From Heteronotia binoei (lineage: Eukaryota), in assembly GCF_032191835.1 (NCBI RefSeq), contig NC_083227.1, positions 167,090,001 through 167,154,000 on the forward strand: 64,000 nucleotides of DNA, in the 5' to 3' direction. How positions within the stretch are numbered: the first letter of the stretch is position 1; the number at the start of each line of letters is the position of its first letter. Positions 4,231 through 64,000 of the stretch are shown here, one piece after another. Made by a program: the position numbers and the translations under genes. Under the pieces are notes generated by a model. That model made no database searches. It was not told where the DNA came from and was given only the letters and a program-made list of their open reading frames with translations.

Positions 4231-4693
4231 TGTAAATATCACCTGAAACTCACTTGATACTCAGTAAATATTCATTGCACAAGTAGCCTATCAACCACAC
4301 ATACCTAGTGCATCAGGTTCCAAACTGTGACTTCCTTTTCACTTCCATTCAGAACAATGGTTGTTGGCTTCCCAGCTCTCTTGTTCTGAACAGTACCTTG
4401 CCAACTACCTCTCACTCTAGAAATGTACAACTGCAAGGCAACAGTGCACTGAAAGATGATAGAGCACTTTTCTCCCCTCCCTGCTTGTCCTATATCAGAA
4501 CTGGGCTGAAAGAAACATATGTCAGGCAACGGGACACAGTGATGCATCAGGGAACAGGGTAAAATTTAACTCCCCTCCTCTGTGTTTTTCGCAAAAAAAA
4601 AATCACCCCCCCCGCTCATAAACAGGGCAAAAAGGAAAAATGTAATTTGTAAATATCACCTGAAACTCACTTGATACTCCGTAAATATTCATT
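4231..4693. repeat. 46 bp dispersed direct repeat (4231-4276 and 4648-4693, one mismatch)
   Basis: TGTAAATATCACCTGAAACTCACTTGATACTC(A/C)GTAAATATTCATT occurs twice, 417 bp apart. Confidence 0.85.
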
Positions 4694-5491
4694 CTCACCT
4701 AACTATACACCCTGTATAAATCCTATTTATTTTCTGAAGAGCAAATTTCTCCATTTAATTAGAAAGAGGGCTGCAGATATAATACTTTATTGTATTAATG
4801 TGCTTCTAAGCTCTCTCTCACACATTCATCTTCACACTGGAAACAGTAACAGGAGATATTGCCATCAACTACCATGCAGAGTTGCTAGATCCTTACGTAT
4901 CAGTTTATAGCTTGAATTATAACAAAATTGATGGTTTGTAGGATGGATTTCTTAGCAGACCCGTCAGTTACGGGATCAGAACTATATTCTTGCTGAGGTG
5001 TTCATCTTTTGTCTCCAACAGATCTAATAGCCTTGGAGAGAGAAAGTACTATTTTTCTCCCTGTGCTGTTTCCATATAGGAAACTCCTCCTGTTCCGCTC
5101 CAAGTTATACCATAGGTGCTTTTAAATTAAAGACTGCAGAAGATCTGACCACAGGCCTCTCATATTGCATTTACTGAAGATATATGGAACTTGGAAAACC
5201 TTGTATAGCTCCTGAAAAGTCGGGGACTCGTGATGATTACAAATCCACATTTCTGATCGACTTCTGGGGAAAGCTGAAAAGAAACCAAAGGCATCTCCGT
5301 TCTTCATGCTTCCCTAGCCTTAGGAAAACAAAGCTTTCAAGCAGACGTCCAAAGATGCTTTAAGCTTTCCCTACAACAAAAGGACCCCCTACGGCACTCC
5401 CATATGTCCTCCAAACTCTGCTGAGATCTCCCACCAGAAGTGAAAACTATGACCTGGCTGAAGGACAGCAGCAAATTAGTTTCCCTTACTG

Positions 5492-36964: not shown

Positions 36965-37136
36965 TCAGTTAGTCTCATAGGAGGACAGCAGAGCAGCATC
37001 AACTGGCTCCATGCACGAAGGACATGTGAATGATCGCATCAGCCAGTCATCAATGCAGTGTACATGGTAGATGTGCAAGCATGGCAGGAACCGAATGGGG
37101 TCTCCATATACAAAATCCAGCATGCAGATCACACAC
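36965..37136 (-). CDS. RNF11-like exon 3 (RING-H2, stop)
   Basis: (E)CVICMLDFVYGDPIRFLPCLHIYHVHCIDDWLMRSFTCPSCMEPVDAALLSSYETN*, a C3H2C3 RING. Total 456 nt = 151 aa + stop. Confidence 0.96.
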
Positions 37137-37384
37137 CTGGAGCCAGGCAGAGAAAAAAAGTGGGGGAAAGATGGCATTAGCAGATGAAAGCCACAAATAG
37201 GTTTCTAGTCTTCTACATCCCCTGCCCAAATTACATCGTAACAATTCAGAGCCACTAGAAAGCAGCACTAGTTACTTGCTATCTTGCCCGATGCTTATAA
37301 AACTTTAAAAACTAGTCCCCAAAGCCATTAACATTAAACTCCATTTGTAACAAGTAATATTGCAAAGTTCTCAAAGAGAAAGGA

Positions 37385-41805: not shown

Positions 41806-42650
41806 CATGGATTTGCAGGCCCCTTGCACAAACTCTAGAGCTCCTCAGGGAACCCAGGCTGGGAACCACCAGCCTAGCATGACAGTCCTAGAAAATAAGA
41901 GATGGGCCATGCTATGGAGGAGTGGTTACTGGAAAGGAGGCACCACATTGCCTGAATGGACAAGTAGCCACAGTGGTTGGAAGACTGCAGTGGGGAGGGA
42001 GAAGGGGACAAACTGGCTTTCTTCTTCTTCAGTAGACACAGAAGTTTGCCCCATTCTTCCTCTTCGCTACAGTCTCTTGACCCTTGGTGGCTATTACTCC
42101 ATATGGGCCCGATGACCACAAGAATAAACTTCCCCAGTGTTGGAATAGAGCTGCTGGGGAGAGGGGAATGCAGGAAAAATCTACAGCCATTGCATCTGCA
42201 GATTACAGATTCTAAGCCATAGTTCCTGAGGTGAAAGAAGCCAAATCCAGAGGGCATTTGTGTTTGTACATGCAGAGATCATTCTTTCAGTCAGAACGGC
42301 CTCACACATTTCTCTAAAGGAGCATTTTGATCAACAACAACTGCTGCCCCCCCCCCATCTGACTTCCTGCTTTTTTTCATATTTCTTCTATAATTGGAGA
42401 ATCTTGCTATCTCCTCAATAAGTTCAGCCAGTCATCAATGCATCTTGAGAAGAAGACACTTGCTTCATTTAGGAAGTGGGATGCCATATAGCTTTAAGGG
42501 ATCTAAAATAAGTGGACAGGGCCTATACAGGTGCGTAGAACAACACGCTGCACACAAGCCAATGAAGTGTACAGCCTCTAGGCACTATTAGCAAATAACG
42601 GCAATGGAGCTAGCAGGGTAAATACAAGGCATGGCATGTGAAGAACATAC

Positions 42651-42820
42651 TCTTTAATTTTCTTTTCTGAGGGCTCCGAACCCGGATCAAAGATTCCTTT
42701 GGGAAGGTGTTGGATTAGCCCAATCCTCTGCGCAATACGGATCTGCTCCTCTTCCGTCAGTTGTGTGGCGAGACGCGCCTGGCTGGGCGTTGGATGATAC
42801 ACTGGAATCGGTGCATGTTC
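42651..42820 (-). CDS. RNF11-like exon 2
   Basis: TAG|EHAPIPVYHPTPSQARLATQLTEEEQIRIAQRIGLIQHLPKGIFDPGSEPSEKKIK(E)|GTATG, 170 nt. Matches the RNF11 central/UIM-like segment. Confidence 0.95.
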
Positions 42821-43590: not shown

Positions 43591-44315
43591 AAAAAAGAAG
43601 CAATCCTGGATAAATGTATTTATTTACTTCATCTATACCCTGCCTTTCTCCCCACTGGGAACTCAAACGGACTTAAATAGCTATTTTCTCTTCCATTTTA
43701 TTTTCATAATAATCCTGTTGAGGCAGGTGAGGCTGGCTCAAGGTTACTCATCGAACTCCATGGCAAAGTGGGGATTTGAACCTAGGTCACCCAAATCCTA
43801 ATCTGACACTCTAACCACTATAGTGATAAAATCTTTGAGGAACCAATAAACTCCTCCTACCCAGGGATGCATCTAGATAGGGACAGTGAGCCAATAGTAG
43901 TATACTGTTAAGAGTGCGAAGATCACATCCCAGTTCCTTTCACACACTGGTGTGCCTTTGCTCCAGAGCCATGGCACTGTTTTAGCTAGCCATAAACTAC
44001 TCTGTACTGAAGTGTACATACCTCTATGGCATGTGGCAGTATAAAGTGCTGTCCCCAAAAGGTTTTTTTATTAGTATGAATAATTTCTCCTGTCCTTGGT
44101 TTCTCTCCCCTCGCCAAAGTAGTCTGTCCATGTTTGTTTCTTCTAAGACCTGCAGTATTTTCTGGGCACAGAATTTATTTTATTTCTTTATTTAGTAGGC
44201 TTATATCCTGCCTTTTCCCATAAATGGATTCAAGGCGGATCACAACATATAATAATAACAGTAAAAAAAAACCCCTACACGTCAAAGTTAAAACACCATA
44301 TTAAAATTAAACAGT

Positions 44316-45001
44316 TTAAGGCCAGGGTGAAAGCCGACCCTCTATGCTGGAGGGGGTGTGGGCTACCAGGCACATTTATCCACTGTTGGTGGGAGTGTCC
44401 GAAGATACACAAATTCTGGAAGTCTATCCTGGAAACGACATCAAAAATAATAGGGGTTAGTATCCCTTGCACACCCACAGTAGCCCTGTTAAACCTATGG
44501 CCGGATCAGAAGCCCCCGACCTTGAAACAGGAGCTAGCTGCATTGCTTTTCCTAGCAGGCAAAATAACTATAGCCTCATACTGGAAACAACCTGATAGCC
44601 CACCACTCCAGAACTGGTGCAAAAAGGTATGGGATATCTTGATACAGGATAAACTGACAACGGCTATCGCTATGCTAGACAATACCAAAGAGGGAGATTG
44701 GTTCCTACAAAAATGGTTTGACTTCCTTGAACACGTGAATAGCGCTGACGCTATGTTTGGGAAAATGCCGGCAAAATATGTGAACTTCACGATCTATTAA
44801 CACTGAATTGGACACAACCCATTGATCACTAACTCTGTTATATTTGCACTGTGTGAGAGACTTCTCTTTGCTGTAAAAGCTGTTTAACAACAATGAACGT
44901 GACGGCTCATGTAAGGTTAGGTCTTGGACCCCGTGTTGGGGTGTGTTGTAGTTGTTGAAATGTTATTTAAAATGTTAATAAAAATTTTAAATTTAAAAAA
45001 A
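44316..45001 (+). mobile_element. 5'-truncated L1 3' end
   Basis: ORF 44327-44800 is clearly homologous to the 48104-49341 ORF2 C-terminus (ADPLCW.GCG..GTF.HCWWECP). AATAAA + polyA; TSD AAAATTAAACAGT (44303-44315, 45002-45014). Confidence 0.88.
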
Positions 45002-45915: not shown

Positions 45916-46563
45916 AAACAAACAAAATCTCATACTTGGATTTCCCTTCCTTCCTTCCTTCCTTCTCTAAAGTGACGTTTTATGCTGCAGGCAGGACATC
46001 TCATATTTTAAGCTGCTGTACGAAGCCTAGCAATTTGAAGTGCTAATGACTAAATGCAAGCAGCCCTACGCACGCAGCTGTTCCTCTACGAACAAGTCAG
46101 ACTCGATATTTTTCACACTGTGACGGAATGGAGATTTATTCTTTCTGTTTCTATTCCACTCTCCCCCACTATTGTGGGACTCAGAGCAGATTAGCGCATA
46201 TAATAAACAGTTTAAAATATAGTTTAAAACATACATCAAATTCAGGCATGTACAAGTAATCAGATGATATATAACGACATTATCACTATCCCAAGGGAAA
46301 TAAAAAAGGAGGGAGAAGAGGCATGAGGAACTATATACATAGGAACTACCTTGGATACACCTGTATGCTTGGCAATACATCTGTTTTTCTCAACCAATTT
46401 ATCCCTGTAATTCTTAAATGTCCTTCAAAGCAAGTAAACAGTCCTTAGTAGAAACTCAAACTTTAAATGTTGCCAAGTATGAAAATCTGCTATCGTCTTG
46501 TTTTTCTGTTGAGAGACACAGAGAGCCCGGTTGTTCCTCTTTGAAGTAATTCAATAGGTGTAG

Positions 46564-46624
46564 TAGCAGCAACACGAGTCCTAGGTTCAAATTCGTGTTT
46601 CCTTTACACTTCCTCTGGCCGCTA
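46564..46624 (-). ncRNA. second copy of the hammerhead-like motif, in the inverted pseudo-LTR
   Basis: Reverse complement of 51509-51569 with the same CAGAGGA core and one extra stem III mismatch. Confidence 0.6.
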
Positions 46625-47908
46625 TTTTTACACTCTGGAACTTAACATGCAAATAAACATGTAAATAAAATAAATATATAGAGTATGTTTTTACAGAAGT
46701 TAACCTTCCAACATTTTCAGTGCATGTAGTCGCACAGCATCTAACACCCCGTGCTTAGGCAACAGCTCACAGCCATATCTTATCAGTTTGCACAAACGGT
46801 TCTTGCCATAGAGCAATCCAAGCATGCGTTATACCGGCTATCCCAGCTGATGTCAATTACATTCTGATTCATGTGGTACAACTTAACAGTTATTACACAA
46901 ACATAAAAAAAATCTAAGGAAGCATTCAAACTTTTTCCTTATTTACCAAGTTTCCTTATTTACCACATTCCTATTTTGGAAACATGTCAATGTTTAATTA
47001 TTTGTTCTCTTTTAGTGAAGCTGATAAAGCGAGTATTTTGGCCACTATGTCCCCAATTATGGACACAGGTGGTAATACACAGGATGAGGAATGGAATAAA
47101 GTAACTATGTTAAATAAGAAAAAGATACGCATGCAGTTACTTGCTGCGTCTTTAATAGACTATTGTCGGGCTTCCAGGATTCCGTGGGGTCTTAGATTCC
47201 ACAAGGCACTGCCATGTTTTTAGACTCCAATGATTTTAAAAAACGATGGATAGCGATTGTTAACAAATATTCAACTGACTTCATGTTACTGATTATACAG
47301 AAGTCTCAAGAGGAAATTGTTAAAACAGATGAGGAGATAGAGGCTTTACAAAAAAAAGATAGAGGGAACGCTAGCCAAAGATACACTAGAATAGAAAATA
47401 GTAGACCTTCAGAGTATGTTAAAGGAATCTGTGTCTAAAATTAAGGAGGTGAAAATTAAGGAATGTAAACGTGATGCTAGGGATTATGAGAACTCAAAGG
47501 TTTACAGATGGTTTTCAATGGGAAATCAGTTCAATAGGAAAAGAGTCTCGTGGGCAGATCTCACGACACCTAATTCTGAAAATGAAATAGGTGATGTCAC
47601 TACAGTAACTTCAGGGGATGAGGGCATGTTCTACAGATTCAGGAGACCCATTGTGGACCGTAATTCTAAAAGGAAAATAGAGGAATCAAACAACTCCAAG
47701 GAACAGGCCAGGAAGGCAAAGAAGAAAACTTAGTTATTAATCTTTCTTTCAAAATGCTTACACAAAAGGAGCACCAGGTTTTTAATTTAGGCTTGGGCTT
47801 TGCTCCATTCGAGACTTATGATTCATTTCAGACCAGAATTGATTTTTACAAGTTCATGCATTCTTTAAAACTGAAATTTTGTTTGGTACTAGTGTAAGGG
47901 TCAATTTC

Positions 47909-49341
47909 TTTTTTTATAATTTAAATTTTATTGAAAAAAAAGGAATTTTTTACAAATAACATTCCCTATCATAGGGAATCACAACAAAAACTTTGTATGA
48001 ACCGTCACATCAGATATTTCTAGTTAGCATTTGGATACAAATACAACAAATGCTGTATAAATGCCAGTAAGTCATTAGGCCGAGGGTTACAGACAGTCAA
48101 AGGTTAATAAATCATAAAGTTCAAATATTTAGCCGGTAGTTTCCCAAATATGGTATCAGCACTATTCACGTACTCAAGGAAGTCAAACCATTTTTGTAAG
48201 AACCAGTCACCCGCCCTTACATTGTCTAGCAATATTATAGTTGTTGTCATCTTGTCATGGATTAGTACATCCCACACCTTGTTACACCAATTCTGGAGTG
48301 GGGGGCAATTAGGTTGTTTCCAATAAGTGGCTATAGTTATCTTACCAGCAAGTAAAAGTAATGCGACTAGTTCCTGCTTTAAGGTAGAAAGCTCCTGGTC
48401 AGGCCATAGATTTAATAGAACCACTGCGGGCGTAAATGGAATACTAACCCCTATTATTTTCGATATTATTTCCAGGATAGATTTCCAGAATTTATTTACC
48501 ATCGGACATTCCCACCAACAGTGGACGAATGTACCCAGTTGACCGCAACCTTTCCAACATAATGGATCAGCCTTTGCCTTGCCCTTAAAAAGTCTATGGG
48601 GAGTCGCATACCATCTTGCGAATATTTTATAATTTTGAAGTCGAAAATAAAGTGATTTGGATTTAAATAAAGGAGATAACCAGAGCTTACTCCATTGGTC
48701 GTCATTGATTGAAATTAGACAGTCTTTTTGCCAATTGTTTTGCTGGTTGGAGGAGCAGTTCCAAATATTTTGATTTAAAAGGGTATATAGCAAAGAAATA
48801 ACACCTTTAATAGAGGAGATGCCTTTTTTTATCAGTTTCTCAACCGGGTTTAGTGGTCTGTTGTGCATTACAATAGGTATTACTTGATGCAATGCATGGT
48901 GCACCTGAAGATACTGAAACCACGGAATAGAGGTCTTGATTTTATTTTCCAATTGAGGGTGAGAACACAATTTCCCATTGATTGTAATATCCGTGAGTTT
49001 AAAAATGTTATTCTCCCTCCAAATTCTAAATTGAGTCTTGTCTCTACCCGGGGGGAACCAAGATTGGCCTAGGAATGCCATAACTGGTGATGAAGCTGGA
49101 GAAATAACATTCCTCCATTGGTCCCAAAGCTGTAGGGTGAACTTCAGAAAAGGGTTTGAGATGGTATACTCTCTTCTGTCTGCTCTCGAGCACCAAATGA
49201 ACTCATGTAAGAGTAAGTTAGGTATGCTAGCCTTTTCAACTTGTACCCATGCCGGGTTAGAGTATGGGGAAGCATATAAAACAATAACTCTCAATTGTGC
49301 GGCCAAAAAGTATTTATCCACTAGTGGAACAGCCAGACCTC
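47909..49341 (-). mobile_element. 5'-truncated L1 retrotransposon nested in the Penelope ORF
   Basis: 16 bp TSD TGTAAGGGTCAATTTC (47893-47908, 49342-49357), AATAAA plus polyA tail. Uninterrupted ~410 aa ORF2 C-terminus (GLAVP..KYFLAAQL, CWKGC..GTFVHCWWEC) ending at 48104. Confidence 0.92.
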
Positions 49342-51508
49342 TGTAAGGGTCAATTTCAACCCCAATCATCATTTATACTAAATGTAAGTGAACCCCTCCT
49401 TGTAGCATTTGAAAAAAATAGTTCTTAGGGACTTAGAGAAGAAGGAGGCAATAGCACGCATAAAGGCGGTGAGGTAATTTCAATGAACAAAATTGATTAT
49501 TGTAATATGGTAAAAAAATTGTTAGAGGTTCCTGGACATTATAAAAAACTGGCAGGAGATCCAACAGAGTCAGTGATGAATATAGTTAAAATGATGGTGA
49601 CAGTAGCAATGATGCTGGGTTATATAAATGAGCAGGCAGCTAAGTTTCTATATAATGAGTTTCCGCGATGCCCAGTTATAGTTGTGCTCCCAAAAATCGC
49701 CCTATTTTGAGTCCGTCCAAGGTCTAGATCCACTAGCACAGTATCTGAGTATTTTTCTGCACCCATTTGTGCCTTGTATTAAGTCATTCATTAAAGACAC
49801 TAAGGATTTTATCCAGAAAGGGGAAGGCATAGCAATTCACCCTGATGAAGTCTTAGTAACCATGGATGTGTCTGCGTTATATACTAACGTACTGCATGAA
49901 GAATCAAGAATAGCAGTTGAAGGGTGCTTGAATAGAAGGATAGACAAAATGCATCCCCCTTTTTGTTGGACATACTTGATCTGGTCTTTGAACATAATTT
50001 TTTTAGGTTTTTGGATGATTTTTATTTGCAAATGTCAGGAGTGGCCAAGGGTTCTCCATGTGCACCAGATGCGGCAAACCTGTTCATGGAATACTTTGAA
50101 ACGACATTTTTTATGAATGCGCAAGTAAATCCATTCTATGAGAATATAGTACAATATTATCGATACATCGACAACTTGTGTCTTGTGTACAGAGACCAAA
50201 GTACTATAGATGCATTCACAACTTGGTGTAATGATCTTCACCCAACCATCAAGTTTGAAGTTTATTGTAACCCGAATGAAATTAATTTCCTAGATACTGT
50301 TGTATTTAGAGACACAAATGACAGATTCGGCATCAGATTGTACTCTAAACCCACAGATAGAAATTTCCTCCTTCAATTTGACTCTTCCTTCCTCCTCATG
50401 TTAGGACCAGTTTGCCTTATGGGCAACTAATGAGAATTAAGCATAATTGTACTAGAGAGTCAGATTATGTAGAGGCTAGCAGCAACCTCTGTAAACAATT
50501 AGAACGACAAAGCTATCCTAAAGAAGTTTCACAAAATGCCATGATCAGGGCTCAGGATAAAGATAGGAAAGAAGTGTTGCAGGACAAAAAGGAGTCAGAA
50601 CAGAATTCGGACCGTAGGTTTGCCTGTGCTTTCCAATATTCAACTAGAGCCACACAAATAACTAAGATACTGAAAAAGTACTGGCATCTGACAGAGGATC
50701 TGCCAGGATGTTCTTCATTTCCAATAACTGGCTGGAGAAGTGCAGAACGTTAAGGGACATGTTAATATGTTCAGATATTGCAGAAGAGGCTTCCAATGTA
50801 CAGGATATGCCCATAGGTAAAACGTAAAAATTGTTCAATCTGTGCTAATACTTTGGAATAGAGTGAAATTACCATTAATGGTTTTCATTGGAAATTTACA
50901 CATTTTTCAACCTGCAGTACATCTAGAATAATTTATATTTTAAGGTGTCCATGTCCGAGATTCTATGTCGGTTCTAGAATGCGTAGCCTAAGGGCACGTT
51001 TTTTGAACATAAGTCTAGAATTCGTCAGTCAAATACAGATGCGCCGACCATGCAACACTGTGTTGATTTCCAGCACTCCTGTGAGGAGATACAATGTACT
51101 GTGGTGTATGCCTTTAAGGGCCATCGTTACAATGCTGAGAATGTATCTAAAATTGTATTACAAAAAGAAGCCTTTTTTATTCACAAATCCTGGACCATGT
51201 CCGCGTGGGGTTTGAATGCTTCCTTAGATTGTTATGTTTGTGTAATAACTGTAAGTTGTACCACATGAATCAGAATGTAATTGACATCAGCTGGGATAGC
51301 CTGTATAACTCATGCTTGGATTGCTCTATGGCAAGAACCGTTTGTGCATACTGATAAGATATGACTGTGAGCTGTTGCTTAAGCACCGGGTAAATTAGAT
51401 GCTGTGTAACTACATGCACTGAAAATGTTAAAGGTTAACTTCTGTAAAAACATACTCTATATATTTATTTTATTTATATTTTGCATGTTAAGGTCCGGAG
51501 TATAAAAA

Positions 51509-51569
51509 TAGCGGCCAGAGGAAGTGTAAAGGAAACACGAGCTTGAACCTAGGACTCGTGTTGCTGCTA
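51509..51569 (+). ncRNA. type I hammerhead-ribozyme-like motif (variant core) in the Penelope 3' pseudo-LTR
   Basis: Stem I TAGCGGC/GCTGCTA; core CAGAGGA (consensus CUGANGA); 9 nt linker; GAAA; stem III CACGAG/CTCGTG with palindromic CCTAGG in the loop; UU cleavage doublet at 51561-51562. Confidence 0.65.
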
Positions 51570-52029
51570 CTACACCTGTTGAATCACTCTTCCAAGAGGA
51601 ACAGCCGGGCTATCTGCATCTCTCAACAGAAAGACAAGACGACAGCAGATTTTCATACTTGGCAACATTTAAAGTTTGAGTTTCTACCAAGGACTGTTTA
51701 CTTGCTCTGAAGGACGTTTAAGAATTACAGTGATAAAGTGGTTGAGTAAGAGTGTTTTGCACTTATATGGCAACATTTGGTGCACTGTGTTTTTCTTGCT
51801 TTTCCTAAACTCCACACAAGTTTCCTTATTTACCGAATACATCTGTTTTACAGGCCCTGCAGAATTTACCTAAGTCCTCCAGGGCCCCGGATCTTGCTCA
51901 GAAGTGCGTTCACAAAACTGGAGCTACTGCCCAAAAGGCTCCAGCTCTAGCTGAGGTTGGGTGAATATTCCTTGGCCCTGGGACCTTCAGGAGAAGTGGT
52001 CCTGACTATGTGTTGGTCTCAGACTGAAG

Positions 52030-52299: not shown

Positions 52300-52622
52300 A
52301 AACTTAATCTAGTATTCAATTCGAAGCCAGTGCAGCTGGTGGAGCACCGGTTGGATATGGGCTCTATCAGGGATTCCTCTAAGGACCCACACCACTGCAT
52401 TCTGGATCAGTTGAAGATTCCGGGTCAGTCTCAAGGGTAGCCCTTTGTAGAGTGAATTAAAGTATTCTAGTCCGGAGGTGACTATTGCAGGAATCACAAT
52501 GGCTAGATCAGGGTGAGATAGGAAAGACGCCAGTTGCTGGACCTGGCATAGATAGAAAAACGCTGATCTAGCCTTATTTGTGATCTGGGCTTCCATTGAC
52601 AAGGAGGTATCCAGAATCACAC
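52300..52622 (-). mobile_element. LINE-2-like fragment
   Basis: GVILDTSLSMEAQI...AFFYLCQVQQL...LEYFNSLYKGLP...LQLIQNA...LHWL. Confidence 0.75.
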
Positions 52623-52623
52623 C

Positions 52624-54479
52624 CATAGAATCATAGAGTTGGAAGGGATCTCCAGGGTCATCTAGTCCAACCCCCTGCACAATGCAGGAAACTCAGATAC
52701 CTCCCCCTAAATTAACAGGATCTTCATTGCTGTCAGATGGCTATCTGGCCTCTGTTTAAAAACCTCCAAGGAAGGAGAGCCCATCACCTCCCGAGGAAGC
52801 CCGTTCCACTGAGGAATTGCTCTGTCAGGAAGATCTTCCTAATGTTGAGCTGGAAACTCTTTTGATTTAATTTCAACCCATAAGTTCTGGTCCTACCTTC
52901 TGGGGCCACAGAAAACAATCCCACACCATCTATATGACAGCCCTTTAAGTGCTTGAAGATGGTGATCATATCACCTCTCAACTGCCTCTTCCCCAGGCTA
53001 AACATACCCAGCTCCTTCAACCTTTCTCCATAGGACTTGGTCTCCAGACCCCTCAGCATCTTCGTCACCCTCCTTTGGGCCTGTTCCAGCTTGTCTATAT
53101 CCTTTTTAAAATGCGGTGCCCAAAACTGAACAGGTGAGGTCTTACCAGAGCAGAGTAAAGCAATACCATCACTTCACGTGATCTGGACACTATACTTCTG
53201 TTGATACAGCTCAAAATTGCATTTGCCTTTTTAGACACCACATCACGCTGTTGACTCATGTTCAGCATATAATCCACTAAGACCCCTAGATCCTTTTTGC
53301 CACTGCTAAGTACCCCCCATTCTATAACCATGCATTGGATTTTTCCTACATGCATAATTTTATATTTATCCCTGTTAAAATTCATGTTATTGGTTTTAGC
53401 CCAGTTTTTCAGCCTGTCAAGGTCACCCTGTATCCTGTTTCTGTCTTCTCCTGTATTTCCAGCCCCTCCCAATTTAGCATCATCTACAAATTTAATAAGC
53501 ATTCCCTCTATTCCTTCATCCAAATCATTTATAAAGATCCTGAACAAAACAGGTCCCAGGACAGATCCTTCAGGCACTCCACTTGTCACTCCTCAAGAGG
53601 ATGAGGAACCATTCACAAGCACTCTTTGGGTGCAACCTGTCAACCAGTTACAGATCCACCTAATGGTAACAGAATCTAAACCACATTTTACCAACTTGTC
53701 AACAAAAATAGTATGTGGAGCCTTATCAAAAGCCTTACTGAAATCAAAGTAAACTATGTCTACAGCATCCCCCTGATCCAGCAAGGTAGTCACTTTCTCA
53801 AAAAAAGAGATCAGGTTAGTTTGACATGACTTGTTCTTGAGAAACCCATGCTGGCTCTTAGTAATCACAGCTATCCTTTCTAAATGTTTCAGAACTGACT
53901 GATTTGTTCTAAAACTTTTCCAGGTATAGACGTCAAGCTGATGGGTTGGTAGTTTCCTGGATCCTTCTTTTTCCCCTTCTTGAAGATGGGGACAACATTC
54001 GCCCGCCTCCTATCTTCCAGCACCTCTCCTGTTCTCCAAGAATTCTCAAAAATAATAGCCAGAGGCCCAGAAATTACATCCGTGAGCTCTTTTAGAACCC
54101 TTGAATGCAGTTCATCTAGCCTCGAGGACTTAGTTTCATTTAACCTGATCCCAGGTTGGAACTTTATACCCTCATTATATGTTCTGTTTTTGTCATGTTG
54201 AACACTGTTTCCTTCAGAACTGAGGAAAAGTAGGAATTGAGCAGTTCTGCCTTTTCTTCATTACCTGTTACAATTTCACTTTCCTGCCCTCGCAATGGGC
54301 CTACCACGTCCTTGCTCTTTTTCTTACTCTGAACATAAGAAAGGAACCCTTTTTTGTTGTTTTTAGCATCTTTGGCCAGCCTAAGCTCATACTGAGATTT
54401 AGCTTTCCTAACATTTTCTCTGCAAGCACTGGTGATTTGTTTATATTTATCCCTGGTTATAAGGCCCTCCTTCCAGTTC
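52624..54479 (-). mobile_element. CR1 LINE fragment
   Basis: QHGFLKNKSCQTNLISFF, TSGVPEGSVLGPVLF, KFVDDAKLGG; CATAGAATCATAGA tail at 52624. Confidence 0.92.
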
Positions 54480-54830
54480 CTAAAGGAGACTCTTTACTGT
54501 TGGTGCTGGTATTAAAGGAGCATTATCCCGAGTCGGGAGCTGGATACTCAATCTCAGATTCCCTTCCCGAGCCACAGGACCTCTGTCTTTGGTGGATTTA
54601 ACTTCAGCCTGCTCTGTTTCAGCCAAAGCATCCAATCCTTTTGTCAGATTTTCTGAGGTGGTACCTGGCCAGCCACCCATCAACAGATATAGATGGGTGT
54701 TATCAGCATACTGGTGACAACCCAGCTTGAAACTCTGCACCAGCATGGTGAGGAGGTGCTTACAGATGTTAAACAGCATTGGGGAGAGTCGTGCATCTTC
54801 TGTCCCAGTACAGCATAGCTCTTTCTCACA
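54480..54830 (-). mobile_element. LINE-2-like RT fragment between two CR1s
   Basis: LSPMLFNIC...HQYADNTHLY...KSTK. Confidence 0.7.
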
Positions 54831-54831
54831 A

Positions 54832-54976
54832 ATAAGAACATAAGAGAAGCCATGTTGGATCAGGCCAATGGCCCATCCAGTCCAACACTCTGTGTCACAT
54901 AAGAACATAAGAGAAGCCCTGTTGGATCAGGCCAATGGCCCATCCAGTCCAACACTCTGTGTCACACAGTGGCCAA

Positions 54977-56832: not shown

Positions 56833-57505
56833 TAGGGTTGCCAAGTCCAATTCAAGAAATATCTGGTGGAGCGAGGAGACTTGAACATATATGAACATAC
56901 GAAGCTGCCTTATACTGAATCAGACCGTCGGTCCATCAAAGTCAGTATTGTCTTCTCAGACTGGCAGCGGCTCTCCGGGGTCTCAAGCTGAGATTTTTCA
57001 CACCTCCTTGCCTGGACTTCGGGGGTGGAGCCAGGAGACTTCGGGGGTGGAGCCAGGAGACTTTGGGGGTGGAGCCAAGATCAAGGCTGTGACAAGCATA
57101 ATTGAATTCCAAAGGGAGTTCTGGCCCTCACATTTCAAGGGACTGCACATCTTTTCAATGCCTTCCTTCCATAGGAAATAATGAAGGATAGGGGCACCTT
57201 CTTTGGGGGCTCATAGAATTGGACCCCCTGGTCCAATCATTTTGAAACTTGGGGGGTATTTTGGGGAGCGGCACTAGATGCTATGCTGAAAATTTGGTGC
57301 CTCTGCCTCAAAAAAAACACAGCCCCCCCAGAGCCCCAGATAACCGTGGATCAATTCTCCATTATTTTCTATGGGAATAAGTCTCCCTGGGGAATAATGG
57401 AGTGTCCAGCAGACCCTTCCCCCGCTTTCTGACGGCCCTGGAGCGGGGGGGGGGGGCCTCCAACCCGGGGGATCCCCTGCCCCCACCTGGGGATTGGCAA
57501 CCCTC
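56833..57505. mobile_element. non-autonomous DNA transposon (TAGGGTTGCC TIR family) with nested tRNA-SINE 3' body at ~56890-57012
   Basis: TAGGGTTGCCAA ... TTGGCAACCCT termini; 22 bp GGGGGTGGAGCCAGGAGACTT minisatellite; closely similar to 62266-62780. No TSD found. Confidence 0.75.
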
Positions 57506-57960
57506 GCTGCCCTTCAGTGCAGCAAACCCAGTCCTGGAGAGAAGCCGCCGAGCCCTCGGCACTACCTGGTAAGGGGGCGGCGGGGCTTGATCCCCAGGCC
57601 CGAGGCTCGCTCCGTCGCCCGTGGAGTCGTTGAGCAGCGAGAGGTCGTCCGCCGCCTGCGAGGAAAGGCAGCCCCCCATGCCCCCCACCCCCGCTCGGGC
57701 CGCAGCCGCCACCGGGACAGACCCGGGCGGCCTCCGTCGCCAGCTCCGGAAGAGTGCGCGGGGCTCGTCGGGAGTTGTAGTTCGGCTACCCAGCACTCCG
57801 CGCTTGCGCACTGTCAAGCGGGGCTGCAGGGCAATGGGAGGGCGAGAAAGGCAGCCTGTTAAGACACACACACACACACACCCCACGTTCGCTTTCTAGG
57901 AGAAGCTGCACGACAGGCGCCGTCTCAGAGGGCGCGTTCTTTGCTTTCATTGCTTCGTTT
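57506..57960 (-). promoter_or_regulatory. CpG island/promoter of the RNF11-like gene
   Basis: High CpG around exon 1. GGGAGTTGTAGT (reverse ACTACAACTCCC, ZNF143/SBS-like) at 57770-57781, CCGGAAG ETS-like site, (CA)n at ~57864-57882. Confidence 0.7.
57566..57679 (-). CDS. RNF11-like RING-H2 protein, exon 1
   Basis: MGGCLSSQAADDLSLLNDSTGDGASLGPGDQAPPPPYQ has Gly2/Cys4, an acidic dileucine DDLSLL and a PPxY motif. 114 nt, donor CAG|GTAG. The N-terminus differs from canonical RNF11 (MGNCLKSP), so it is treated as a paralog. Confidence 0.9.
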
Positions 57961-58129: not shown

Positions 58130-58960
58130 GAAGCTGCCTTCTACTGAATCAGACCCTCCTGGGTCCATCAAAGTCAGTCTTGTCTACTCAGACTGGCAGC
58201 GGCTCTCCAGGGTCTCAAGGAGGTTTTTCACGCCTATTTACCTGGACCCTTTTGAGTTGGAGATGCCAGAGATTGAACCTGGGACCTTCTGCTACTAAGC
58301 AGATGCTCTGCCACTGAGCCACCGTCCCTCCATCACCTACTGCCTGGACCCTTTTGAGTTGGAGATGCCAGAGATTGAACCTGGGACCTTCTGCTTACCA
58401 AGCAGCTGCTCAGCCACTGAGCCACCGTCCCTCCATCACCTACTGCCTGGACCCTTTTGAGTTGGAGATGCCAGAGATTGAACCTGGGACCTTCTGCTAC
58501 CAAGCAGATGCTCTGCCACTGAGCCACCGTCCCTCCATCTCCATCACCTACTGCCTGCACCCTTTTGAGTTGGAGATGCCGGGGATTGAACCTGGGACCT
58601 TCTGCTTCCCAAGCAGATGCTCTGCCACTGAGCCACCGTCCCTCCATCACCTACTGCCTGGACCCTTTTTAGTTGGAGATGCCAGAGATTGAACCTGGGA
58701 CCTTCTGCTACCAAGCAGATGCTCTGCCACTGAGCCACCGTCCCTCCATCTCCATCACTTACTGCCTGGACCCTTTTGAATTGGAGATGCTGGGGATTGA
58801 ACCTGGGACCTTCTGCTTCCCAAGCAGATGCTCAGCCACTGAGCCACCGTCCCTCCATCACCTACTGCCTGGATCCTTTTTAGTTGGAGATGCCAGAGAT
58901 TGAACCTGGGACCTTCTGCTACCAAGCAGATGCTCTGCCACTGAGCCACCGTCCCTCCTC
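58130..58960 (-). repeat. tandem array of 7 tRNA-Ala-derived SINE heads plus one 3' body
   Basis: Units start at 58241, 58343, 58446, 58554, 58657, 58765, 58868 (periods 102,103,108,103,108,103). Each has A box TGGCTCAGTGG and B box GGTTCAATCC/T. Confidence 0.9.
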
Positions 58961-62265: not shown

Positions 62266-62780
62266 TAGGGTTGCCAAGTCCAATTCAAGAAATATCTGGG
62301 GACTTTGGGGGTGGAGCCAGGAGACTTTGGGGGTGGAGCCAGGAGACATTAGGGTTGGAGCCAGGAGACTTTGGGGGTAGAGCCCGGAGACATTAGGGAT
62401 GGAGCCAGAAACAAGGGTGTGACAAGCATAATTGAACTCCAAAGGGAGTTCTGGCCCTCACATTTAAAGGGACGGCACATCTTTTTAAATGCCTTCCTTC
62501 CATAGGAAATAATGAAGGATGGGGCACCTTCTTTTGGGGCTCACAGAATTGGACCCCCTGGTCCAATCTTTTTGAAACTTGGGGGGTATTTTGGGGAGAG
62601 GCACTAGATGCTATACTGAAAATTTGGTGCCCCTACCTCAAAAAACAGCCCCCCCAGAGCCCCCGATACCCGCAGATCAATTCCCCATCATTCCCTATGG
62701 GAATCGTTCAGGGAGGCGCATGAGGGCTGTGGGGGTGGAGCTTCCCCCCGGCCAGTTGGGACCTGGGGATTGGGAAGCCT
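62266..62780. mobile_element. second copy of the TAGGGTTGCC non-autonomous transposon
   Basis: Co-linear with 56833-57505, with ~5 copies of the 22 bp minisatellite and a degenerate right end GGATTGGGAAGCCT. Confidence 0.75.
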
Positions 62781-63493: not shown

Positions 63494-64000
63494 GTGGCTC
63501 GGTGGCAGAGCATCTGCTTGGCAAGCAGAAGGTCCCGGGTTCAGTCCCCGGCATCTCCAACTAAAAAGGGTCCAGGCAAATAGGTGTGAAAAACCTCACG
63601 CTTGAGACCCTGGAGAGCCGCTGCCAGTTAGGGGAGGGACGGTGGGGCTCAGTGGCAGAGCATCTGCTTGGCAAGCAGAAGGTCCCAGGTTCAATTCCCG
63701 GCATCTCCAACTAAAAAGGGTCCAGGCAAGTAGGTGTGAAAAACCTCAAGCTTGAGACCCTGGAGAGCAGGGGAGGGACTGTGGCTCAGTGGCAGAGCAT
63801 CTGCTTGGCAAGCAGAAGGTCCCGGGTTCAATCCCCGGCATCTCCAACTAAAAAGGGTCCAGGCAAATAGGTGTGAAAAACCTCACGCTTGAGACCCTGG
63901 AGAGCCGCTGCCAGTTAGGGGAGGGACGGTGGCTCAGTGGTAGAGCATCTGCTTGGCAAGCAGAAGGTCCCAGAATCAATCCCCAGCATCTCCAACTCAA
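63494..64000 (+). repeat. tandem array of the same tRNA-Ala-derived SINE (>=4 units, runs off the window)
   Basis: Units start at ~63494, 63642, 63781, 63929 (periods 148,139,148). The head ends GGTTCAATCCCCGGCATCTCCA, as in tRNA-Ala. Confidence 0.9.

Follow-up and report, generated by a model that had tools for sequence, protein, structure and literature searches.

We propose that a hammerhead-like motif on the + strand of Heteronotia binoei DNA, at 51509-51569 of the 64,000-nt stretch analysed here (the window), is the degenerate descendant of a type I hammerhead from the 3' tail of a Penelope-like element (PLE), and that it was an inactive or very weak relic already in the RNA that was inserted. 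We give this full explanation about an even chance. Its first part, descent from a PLE hammerhead, is probable: it is favoured by the position and strand of the motif, by its C-N-GA-G-GA-A-G string, GAAA, A15.1-U16.1 and H17, and by the flanking stem. Our model suggests that stem I, C3-G8, G5, A6, A9, the bulged A and then G after A9, G12-A14, A15.1-U16.1 and a cleavable U17 would have been retained from the ancestral ribozyme. The CUGA uridine turn would have lost its U, which is A4 today, helix II would have disappeared entirely, and helix III would have become a stable 7-bp hairpin.

Anatomy of the motif and its inverted copy

The + arm was read directly and folded. Stem I is formed by TAGCGGC (51509-51515) and GCTGCTA (51563-51569), which make 7 bp including one G-U. 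Between these strands follow the core CAGAGGA (51516-51522), with A4 at 51517, the unpaired 9-nt spacer AGTGTAAAG (51523-51531), and GAA (51532-51534) at positions G12-A14. Stem III pairs ACACGAG (51535-51541) with CTCGTGT (51555-51561) around a 13-nt loop (51542-51554) that contains CCTAGG; its 7 bp comprise 6 bp and the A15.1-U16.1 pair (A51535-T51561). The T at 51562 stands for U17, so that G12, A13, A14, the A15.1-U16.1 pair and an H17 before stem I are all in place, with the notional cleavage site between 51562 and 51563. An extra A followed by a G is also found after A9.

The whole 61-nt motif returns in reverse complement at 46564-46624 (-), where A4 is 46616 and the notional cleavage site lies between 46571 and 46570. 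This inverted copy departs from the + arm only at two neighbouring positions, where AT replaces GC in the loop-proximal end of stem III, and its stem III has 6 bp, one pair fewer than that of the + arm. Both arms have A4, and the remaining five fixed core positions are correct. When each copy was folded alone with ViennaRNA, stems I and III formed and all 18 junction nucleotides were unpaired. No Watson-Crick pair closing a helix II is possible within the 9-nt spacer, and there is no C11.1. Direct reading of both arms thus agrees with what an earlier note on this DNA had described, namely the order of the parts, the inverted recurrence (here with its two adjacent differences), A4 in the two arms (51517 and 46616) and a stem II lacking Watson-Crick closure, the spacer being left unpaired by ViennaRNA. 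The same note had called CCTAGG palindromic and had given a palindromic stem III that allows dimeric cleavage as background on PLEs. We rejected CCTAGG as a dimerisation palindrome: it is out of register for a dimer that swaps stem III, and a 6-nt palindrome is expected by chance in a 13-nt loop in about 1 case in 8. Two further readings, of the hairpin as helix II and of the motif on its opposite strand as a type III hammerhead, were discarded because neither has CUGANGA or GAAA in the required places.

Beyond stem I, a possible closing stem would join GTATA (GTGTA in the - arm) at 51500-51504 (+) to TACAC at 51571-51575 (+), set off from stem I by an internal loop AAAA/C. It is predicted in a 111-nt fold of the - arm and is weak in the full tail. 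We speculate that UACAC (51571-51575) could alternatively pair with the GUGUA of the spacer; both pairings are conjectural. Folding of the full tails gave stem III pair probabilities of up to ~1.0 in the + arm and ~0.47 in the - arm, and stem I pair probabilities of 0.01 in the + arm (506-nt tail) and ~0.7 in the - arm. Between the arms, the motif is no better conserved than its flanks, with 2 changes where 4.1 were expected (P = 0.22). We also observed that CC(A/G)GAG...T(A/G)TAAA occurs twice, ~23 nt apart, within 51494-51531 of the window and likewise within 46602-46639 (-). One copy of the repeated CCAGAG...TGTAAA string lies just upstream of stem I, and the other makes up the core and spacer; part of the hammerhead-like 'core' may therefore derive from a small internal duplication.

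A match of this strength is rare by chance. A descriptor that allowed one core mismatch, did not require helix II, and asked for a stem I of at least 7 and a stem III of at least 6 gave 0.05 matches per 64-kb window on both strands (60 dinucleotide shuffles) and none in 660 kb of real PLE loci, and the expected number per 540-nt tail on the sense strand is ~2e-4. The bare topology of two helices and GAAA, with the core ignored, is common, with 24 listed matches in the 64-kb window, several of them overlapping. Consequently, the weight rests on the near-core heptamer being in register and on the location. No convincing canonical or U3-A8 minimal hammerhead was found elsewhere in the tail or in the 64-kb window. 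An exact-pattern scan with core and spacer gave no match in metagenome and viral contigs and three in bacterial genomes, which we judged to be chance. None of 80 other PLE loci showed the architecture that lacks helix II and has a long hairpin as helix III; a relaxed architecture search in them returned chance-like matches only, mostly antisense.

A decayed Penelope-like insertion in the RNF11-like intron

The region from 46.4 to 51.8 kb is one old composite PLE insertion. Its + copy carries a decayed ORF for reverse transcriptase (RT), a CxxC linker and a GIY-YIG endonuclease (IIYILRCPCPRFYVGS) at 49462-51250 (+), broken up by several stops and by four or more frame changes, with an N-terminal piece of the ORF at 47742-47876 (+). 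The 3' tail of this copy (51210-51757, +) comprises a ~500-nt 3' UTR preceded by the final ~40 nt of the ORF. A 155-aa RT piece matches 7675 proteins in a representative protein library, and its best long matches, from Anolis carolinensis and the gecko Paroedura picta, carry RVT_1 and GIY-YIG and reach up to 47% identity. A homology search confined to a range of protein lengths that leaves out full ORFs gave no match for this piece or for a 72-aa C-terminal piece. With the gecko protein P0006, tblastn aligned residues 44-650 over 49462-51238, again across at least four frame changes, and the GIY-YIG motif and CxxC linker can be read in frame at ~50.9-51.1 kb. The RVT_1 and GIY-YIG relatives, the in-frame GIY-YIG and the tblastn span place the element among the C-terminal-endonuclease PLEs, and so identify the Penelope-type element that had been recognized earlier. 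The Neptune clade is marked by a Zn-finger-like CX2-5CxxC linker between RT and endonuclease; here the window copy shows just C-S-I-C, beside a stop, and the relatives P0006 and P0003 have CxxCxxC ahead of GIY-YIG.

An inverted, 5'-truncated PLE copy that consists of tail only (46380-46931, -) abuts the 5' end of the + copy. The two motifs sit in the tails of these two linked copies, one in the 3' tail of the + copy and the other in the tail of its inverted, 5'-truncated neighbour, and not in the two pseudo-LTRs (pLTRs) of one element, as had been assumed before. A layout with an adjacent inverted 5'-truncated copy has been drawn for PLEs (PMC8557442) and is matched by this locus. Of 539 aligned nt, 34 are mismatched between the arms (6.3%; Jukes-Cantor distance 0.066). 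With a presumed rate of 1-2e-9 substitutions per site per year, this old insertion would date back very roughly 15-35 million years.

The PLE ORF is split by a nested foreign insertion at 48103-49372 (-), a 422-aa C-terminal fragment of a LINE-like ORF2 that is named solely from its CWxGCG...HCWWECP motif; no Pfam domains were found in this 422-aa ORF. The locus itself is an old dead insertion made up of a full-length copy and an inverted 5'-truncated copy, with a broken ORF and a nested LINE fragment. Two LINE-like ORF2 C-terminal regions with CWxGCG...HCWWECP, 48103-48596 and 44308-44801, form a 494-nt inverted repeat of 77% identity, and the former copy is the one that sits inside the PLE ORF. 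Adjoining the PLE on the right, at 52309-53868 (-), ORF pieces with RT motifs (FVDDAKLGG, NRSIVSRSREV-type tails) are another decayed non-LTR retrotransposon.

The insertion is flanked by exons of an RNF11-like gene, all on the - strand and with approximate borders: coding exon 1 (MGGCLSS...PPPPYQ) at 57566-57679, exon 2 (PVYHPTPSQ...IGLIQHLPKG) at 42650-42815 and the last exon (RING-H2, ending in ...SSYETN and a stop) at 37007-37144. Since the - strand exons lie at ~57.6, 42.7 and 37.1 kb, it is intron 1 that holds the PLE, and the pre-mRNA carries the - arm motif in sense orientation, which bears out what had been claimed for its context. The dead PLE insertion has no function in the RNF11-like intron and, as a single dead locus, it is of no consequence for the RNF11-like gene.

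Other repeats occur in the window. Just upstream of RNF11-like exon 1, two tRNA-like tandem arrays run in mutually opposite directions at 58241-58958 (-) and 63496-63997 (+), one with a period of 103 nt and 6.9 copies and the other with a period of 137 nt and 3.4 copies. Their units score 36-61 bits with the Rfam tRNA model, and ARAGORN reports several tRNA-Ala(GGC), tRNA-Pro or tRNA-Thr with odd anticodon loops; the arrays are probably satellites derived from SINE heads. A 22-nt unit, GACTTCGGGGGTGGAGCCAGGA, is found in tandem at 57015-57077 (2.9 copies) and, 5 kb apart, at 62301-62408 (4.9 copies), each array lying ~1.1 kb below one of the tRNA-like arrays, at lower coordinates. A 67-nt unit is tandemly duplicated at 54829-54962 with 97% identity.

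Comparison with Penelope-like hammerheads

As controls, we collected 80 PLE loci from metagenome contigs with an alignment of 12 RT-endonuclease proteins. A plain descriptor identified 26 hammerheads in these loci, all taken from the sense strand, lying 166-406 nt after the ORF match in the nine loci measured; some were repeated as pLTRs. The window motif, on the sense strand and ~260 nt past the end of the PLE ORF, fits this position, which speaks for its descent from a PLE hammerhead. The control hammerheads have a stem I of 4-6 bp, the core CUGANGA or its U3-A8 variant, then mostly one extra A and a G, a helix II that spans 3-7 bp with one exception, GAAA, a helix III region of 4-9 nt that is mostly a 4-6 nt palindrome, and H; these stems are partly imposed by the descriptor, and the G-C identity and the extra A are not. 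U4 is invariant (26 of 26, U3-A8 variants included), and G10.1-C11.1 is present in all 16 controls scored, with covariation at the other pairs. The C-N-GA-G-GA-A-G string of the motif corresponds to CUGA(A/G)GA-A-G in the controls, down to the additional A that precedes G10.1, a signature also described in PMC4209133.

When run on 66 held-out loci, a covariance model built from 16 controls, R1, picked up ten more matches, nine of them on the sense strand, at 17.8-48.5 bits. Searched over the whole window at E<=10, R1 did not list the window motif; when forced onto 121 nt, it aligned the motif in the expected register at only 2.9 bits. The Rfam 15 hammerhead models detected nothing in the window motif, either at gathering score or at E<=10 in 301 nt. 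However, the same models also detected none of the canonical-core controls, whether at gathering score (20 loci) or at E<=10 (a stretch of 301 nt); the PLE loci missed include L009, L013-L017, L020, L021, L029, L039, L041, L046, L051, L060, L063, L064, L069 and L079, among others. The silence of Rfam on the window motif therefore carries no weight and, since none of the canonical PLE minimal hammerheads tested was picked up by its models, blanks in such scans are not to be taken for absence. In one of these loci, L021, two tRNA genes of equal score (56.8 bits) lie just downstream of the PLE hammerhead, at 4325-4397 and 4684-4756 (-).

The fetched loci closest to the lizard proteins, L001-L007, share 34-36% identity with them (for example L003:3249-4244 and L004:3450-4597). 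Neither the descriptor nor the model found a minimal hammerhead in the available tails of these nearest PLE relatives, which reach ~1 kb only in L003-L006. The canonical ribozyme may be missing from this clade or lie elsewhere, and the finding lowers the prior that the clade ever carried one.

Judged by the features tested, the motif cannot be counted as a member of either the hammerhead family or the PLE minimal-hammerhead family. Against the type I core C3 U4 G5 A6 N7 G8 A9, both arms have A at position 4. Helices I and III are present, and a third helix, helix II closed by G10.1-C11.1, is missing. From the helix II of metazoan PLEs (4-8 bp, G10.1-C11.1 and an extra nucleotide), only the extra A and then G is found, and instead of a vestigial palindromic helix III of 4-6 nt that works in dimers only, the motif has a 7-bp intramolecular hairpin with a 13-nt loop. 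Its covariance score, 2.9 bits, compares with 17.8-48.5 bits for the held-out cases. In metazoan PLE hammerheads it is helix II that is long, with a conserved G10.1-C11.1, and helix III that is a vestigial palindrome (PMC4209133), as in our controls, so that the vestigial stem II that the earlier note had given as background is the reverse of what is seen. Given this known form, a missing helix II together with a 7-bp helix III is a double departure.

Metazoan PLE minimal type I hammerheads are reportedly also the subject of Lunse et al. 2017. With those described by Cervera and de la Pena (2014; PMC4209133), the motif shares its place in the sense-strand tail a few hundred nt past the ORF, the type I order, the C-N-GA-N-GA core with the extra A and G, GAAA, A15.1-U16.1, H17, a short stem I, and recurrence in inverted truncated copies. 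Where these have U4, a 4-8 bp helix II and a 4-6 nt dimer palindrome, however, the motif shows A4, lacks helix II and forms a 7-bp helix III as a monomer. In this last respect it resembles, by description, the type I hammerheads of the Coprina-type endonuclease-less PLEs of fungi and protists, which have a large stable helix III and a monomeric fold (PMC4209133); neither has recognisable loop-loop contacts. The Coprina-type hammerheads keep the canonical core and helix II, unlike the motif, and belong to other hosts and another PLE clade; that of Serpula cleaves at 0.16-2 per min (PMC4209133). The 'HHR_core' remnants of Naiad elements (Craig et al. 2021, PMC8557442) share the core boxes, a short spacer (7-17 nt) and a location in a PLE 3' UTR. 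These remnants misfit the hammerhead stem descriptors, and the elements proliferate anyway (PMC8557442). The endonuclease is N-terminal in Naiads and C-terminal in the window element, and the exact CUGANGA of the former contrasts with an A4 box, accompanied by good stems I and III, in the latter. Finally, PAc (Poseidon, from Anolis carolinensis; PMC11167929) also provides a lizard PLE hammerhead. Unlike the motif, this one keeps helix II and a canonical core and overlaps the start of the ORF; it cleaves when the element's protein is supplied.

Origin and expected activity of the motif

We hypothesize that both defects, A4 and the missing helix II, would already have been in the RNA or cDNA that made the insertion. 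For A4 this follows from its presence in both arms, as the earlier note had argued in dating it before the insertion. The defects are probably shared by a lineage of the PLE family, the two linked arms counting as about one sample.

In a hammerhead, helix II stacks on the G12-A9 and A13-G8 pairs, and without it there is nothing to stack there. A broken U-turn together with this lost stacking would leave the motif inactive or very feeble, and we predict such a state from the constancy of U4 (26/26) and of G10.1-C11.1 (16/16) in the controls, the missing helix II stacking, and mutagenesis of the CUGA turn. In a comprehensive mutagenesis, single and double mutants of this turn all had low activity, save for a C3/G8 swap, and no second-site rescue was found (PMC9901934). 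Core mutations mostly cause a drastic loss of activity, and the phosphate between A6 and N7 contacts U4 (PMC3088659).

Such defects would be tolerable, because PLE retrotransposition does not depend on hammerhead cleavage; that a PLE lineage could spread with a tail of this kind is supported by published work. Catalytic mutants of the PAc hammerhead left insertion in vitro unchanged, no RNA-seq reads ended at its cleavage site, and it cleaved only upon addition of the element's protein (PMC11167929). The earlier note had left a choice between a family that transposes without self-cleavage and an active non-canonical core. The former is favoured and is already in the literature (PMC11167929, PMC8557442); the latter is unlikely (PMC9901934).

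Two other origins have to be weighed, each of which we consider unlikely. The active elements of the family could be canonical, with CUGA and helix II, and the defects confined to the source copy or due to an RT error copied into the second arm. The arms come from one event or from adjacent events and a fold-back copy would inherit errors of the first cDNA, so that together they amount to roughly a single sample; the invariance of U4 and G10.1-C11.1 among the controls also speaks for a canonical family. Yet this decay would need two lesions, a substitution and a deletion of ~10 nt or more, and the full ORF in the inserted copy suggests the RNA of an active element. Alternatively, the motif could be a look-alike that was never a ribozyme, in which a strong hairpin after GAAA, a 7-bp flanking complement and a near-core heptamer came together by chance. 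Consistent with this are the low R1 score (2.9 bits), the common two-helix and GAAA topology, the nearest PLE relatives in hand that show no hammerhead, the disfavoured stem I in the full + tail, and the local duplication of CCAGAG...TGTAAA. That Rfam finds no hammerhead in the motif would point the same way, but this blank is weightless, canonical controls having been missed too. Against chance stand the expectation of ~2e-4 per tail at such match strength, the strand and ORF distance, which are both right, and the register, which is correct for the additional A and G that follow A9, for A15.1-U16.1 and for H17.

It is very unlikely that the A4 core without helix II is an active non-canonical hammerhead, aided in cleavage by the element's protein, by the closing stem, or by a pairing of the spacer GUGUA with UACAC that replaces helix II. 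The PAc hammerhead does need its element's protein to cleave (PMC11167929), and some activity persists in natural hammerheads whose helix II has just one pair or whose positions 10.1 and 11.1 are mismatched (PMC3088659). A stable helix III would also remove the need for dimerisation, and the spacer GUGUA is indeed complementary to UACAC at 51571-51575. However, chance alone would supply a nearby 5-nt complement in roughly 3-10% of cases, and UACAC pairs better with the upstream GURUA. The inactivity of CUGA-turn mutants other than the C3/G8 swap, the failure of second-site changes to rescue them (PMC9901934), the invariant U4 of the controls and the absence of a conservation signal between the arms all argue against cleavage as well. 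We see only a slight probability that the form with A4, no helix II and a long helix III is a conserved, covarying state of a squamate PLE lineage of hundreds of copies, cleaving as a monomer with protein or through a spacer-tail pairing. Were it conserved and cleaving, it would represent a two-helix hammerhead class with a non-uridine turn; the motif is of modest interest unless the variant is conserved or active.

Under the reading that we favour, a degenerate relic of a PLE hammerhead, defects shared across the lineage would mean that another PLE has spread with a crippled hammerhead, here in the C-terminal-endonuclease clade. If true, this case would join the in vitro result for PAc and the hammerhead-less Naiads in suggesting that cleavage is dispensable for PLEs, most clades of which keep the ribozyme.
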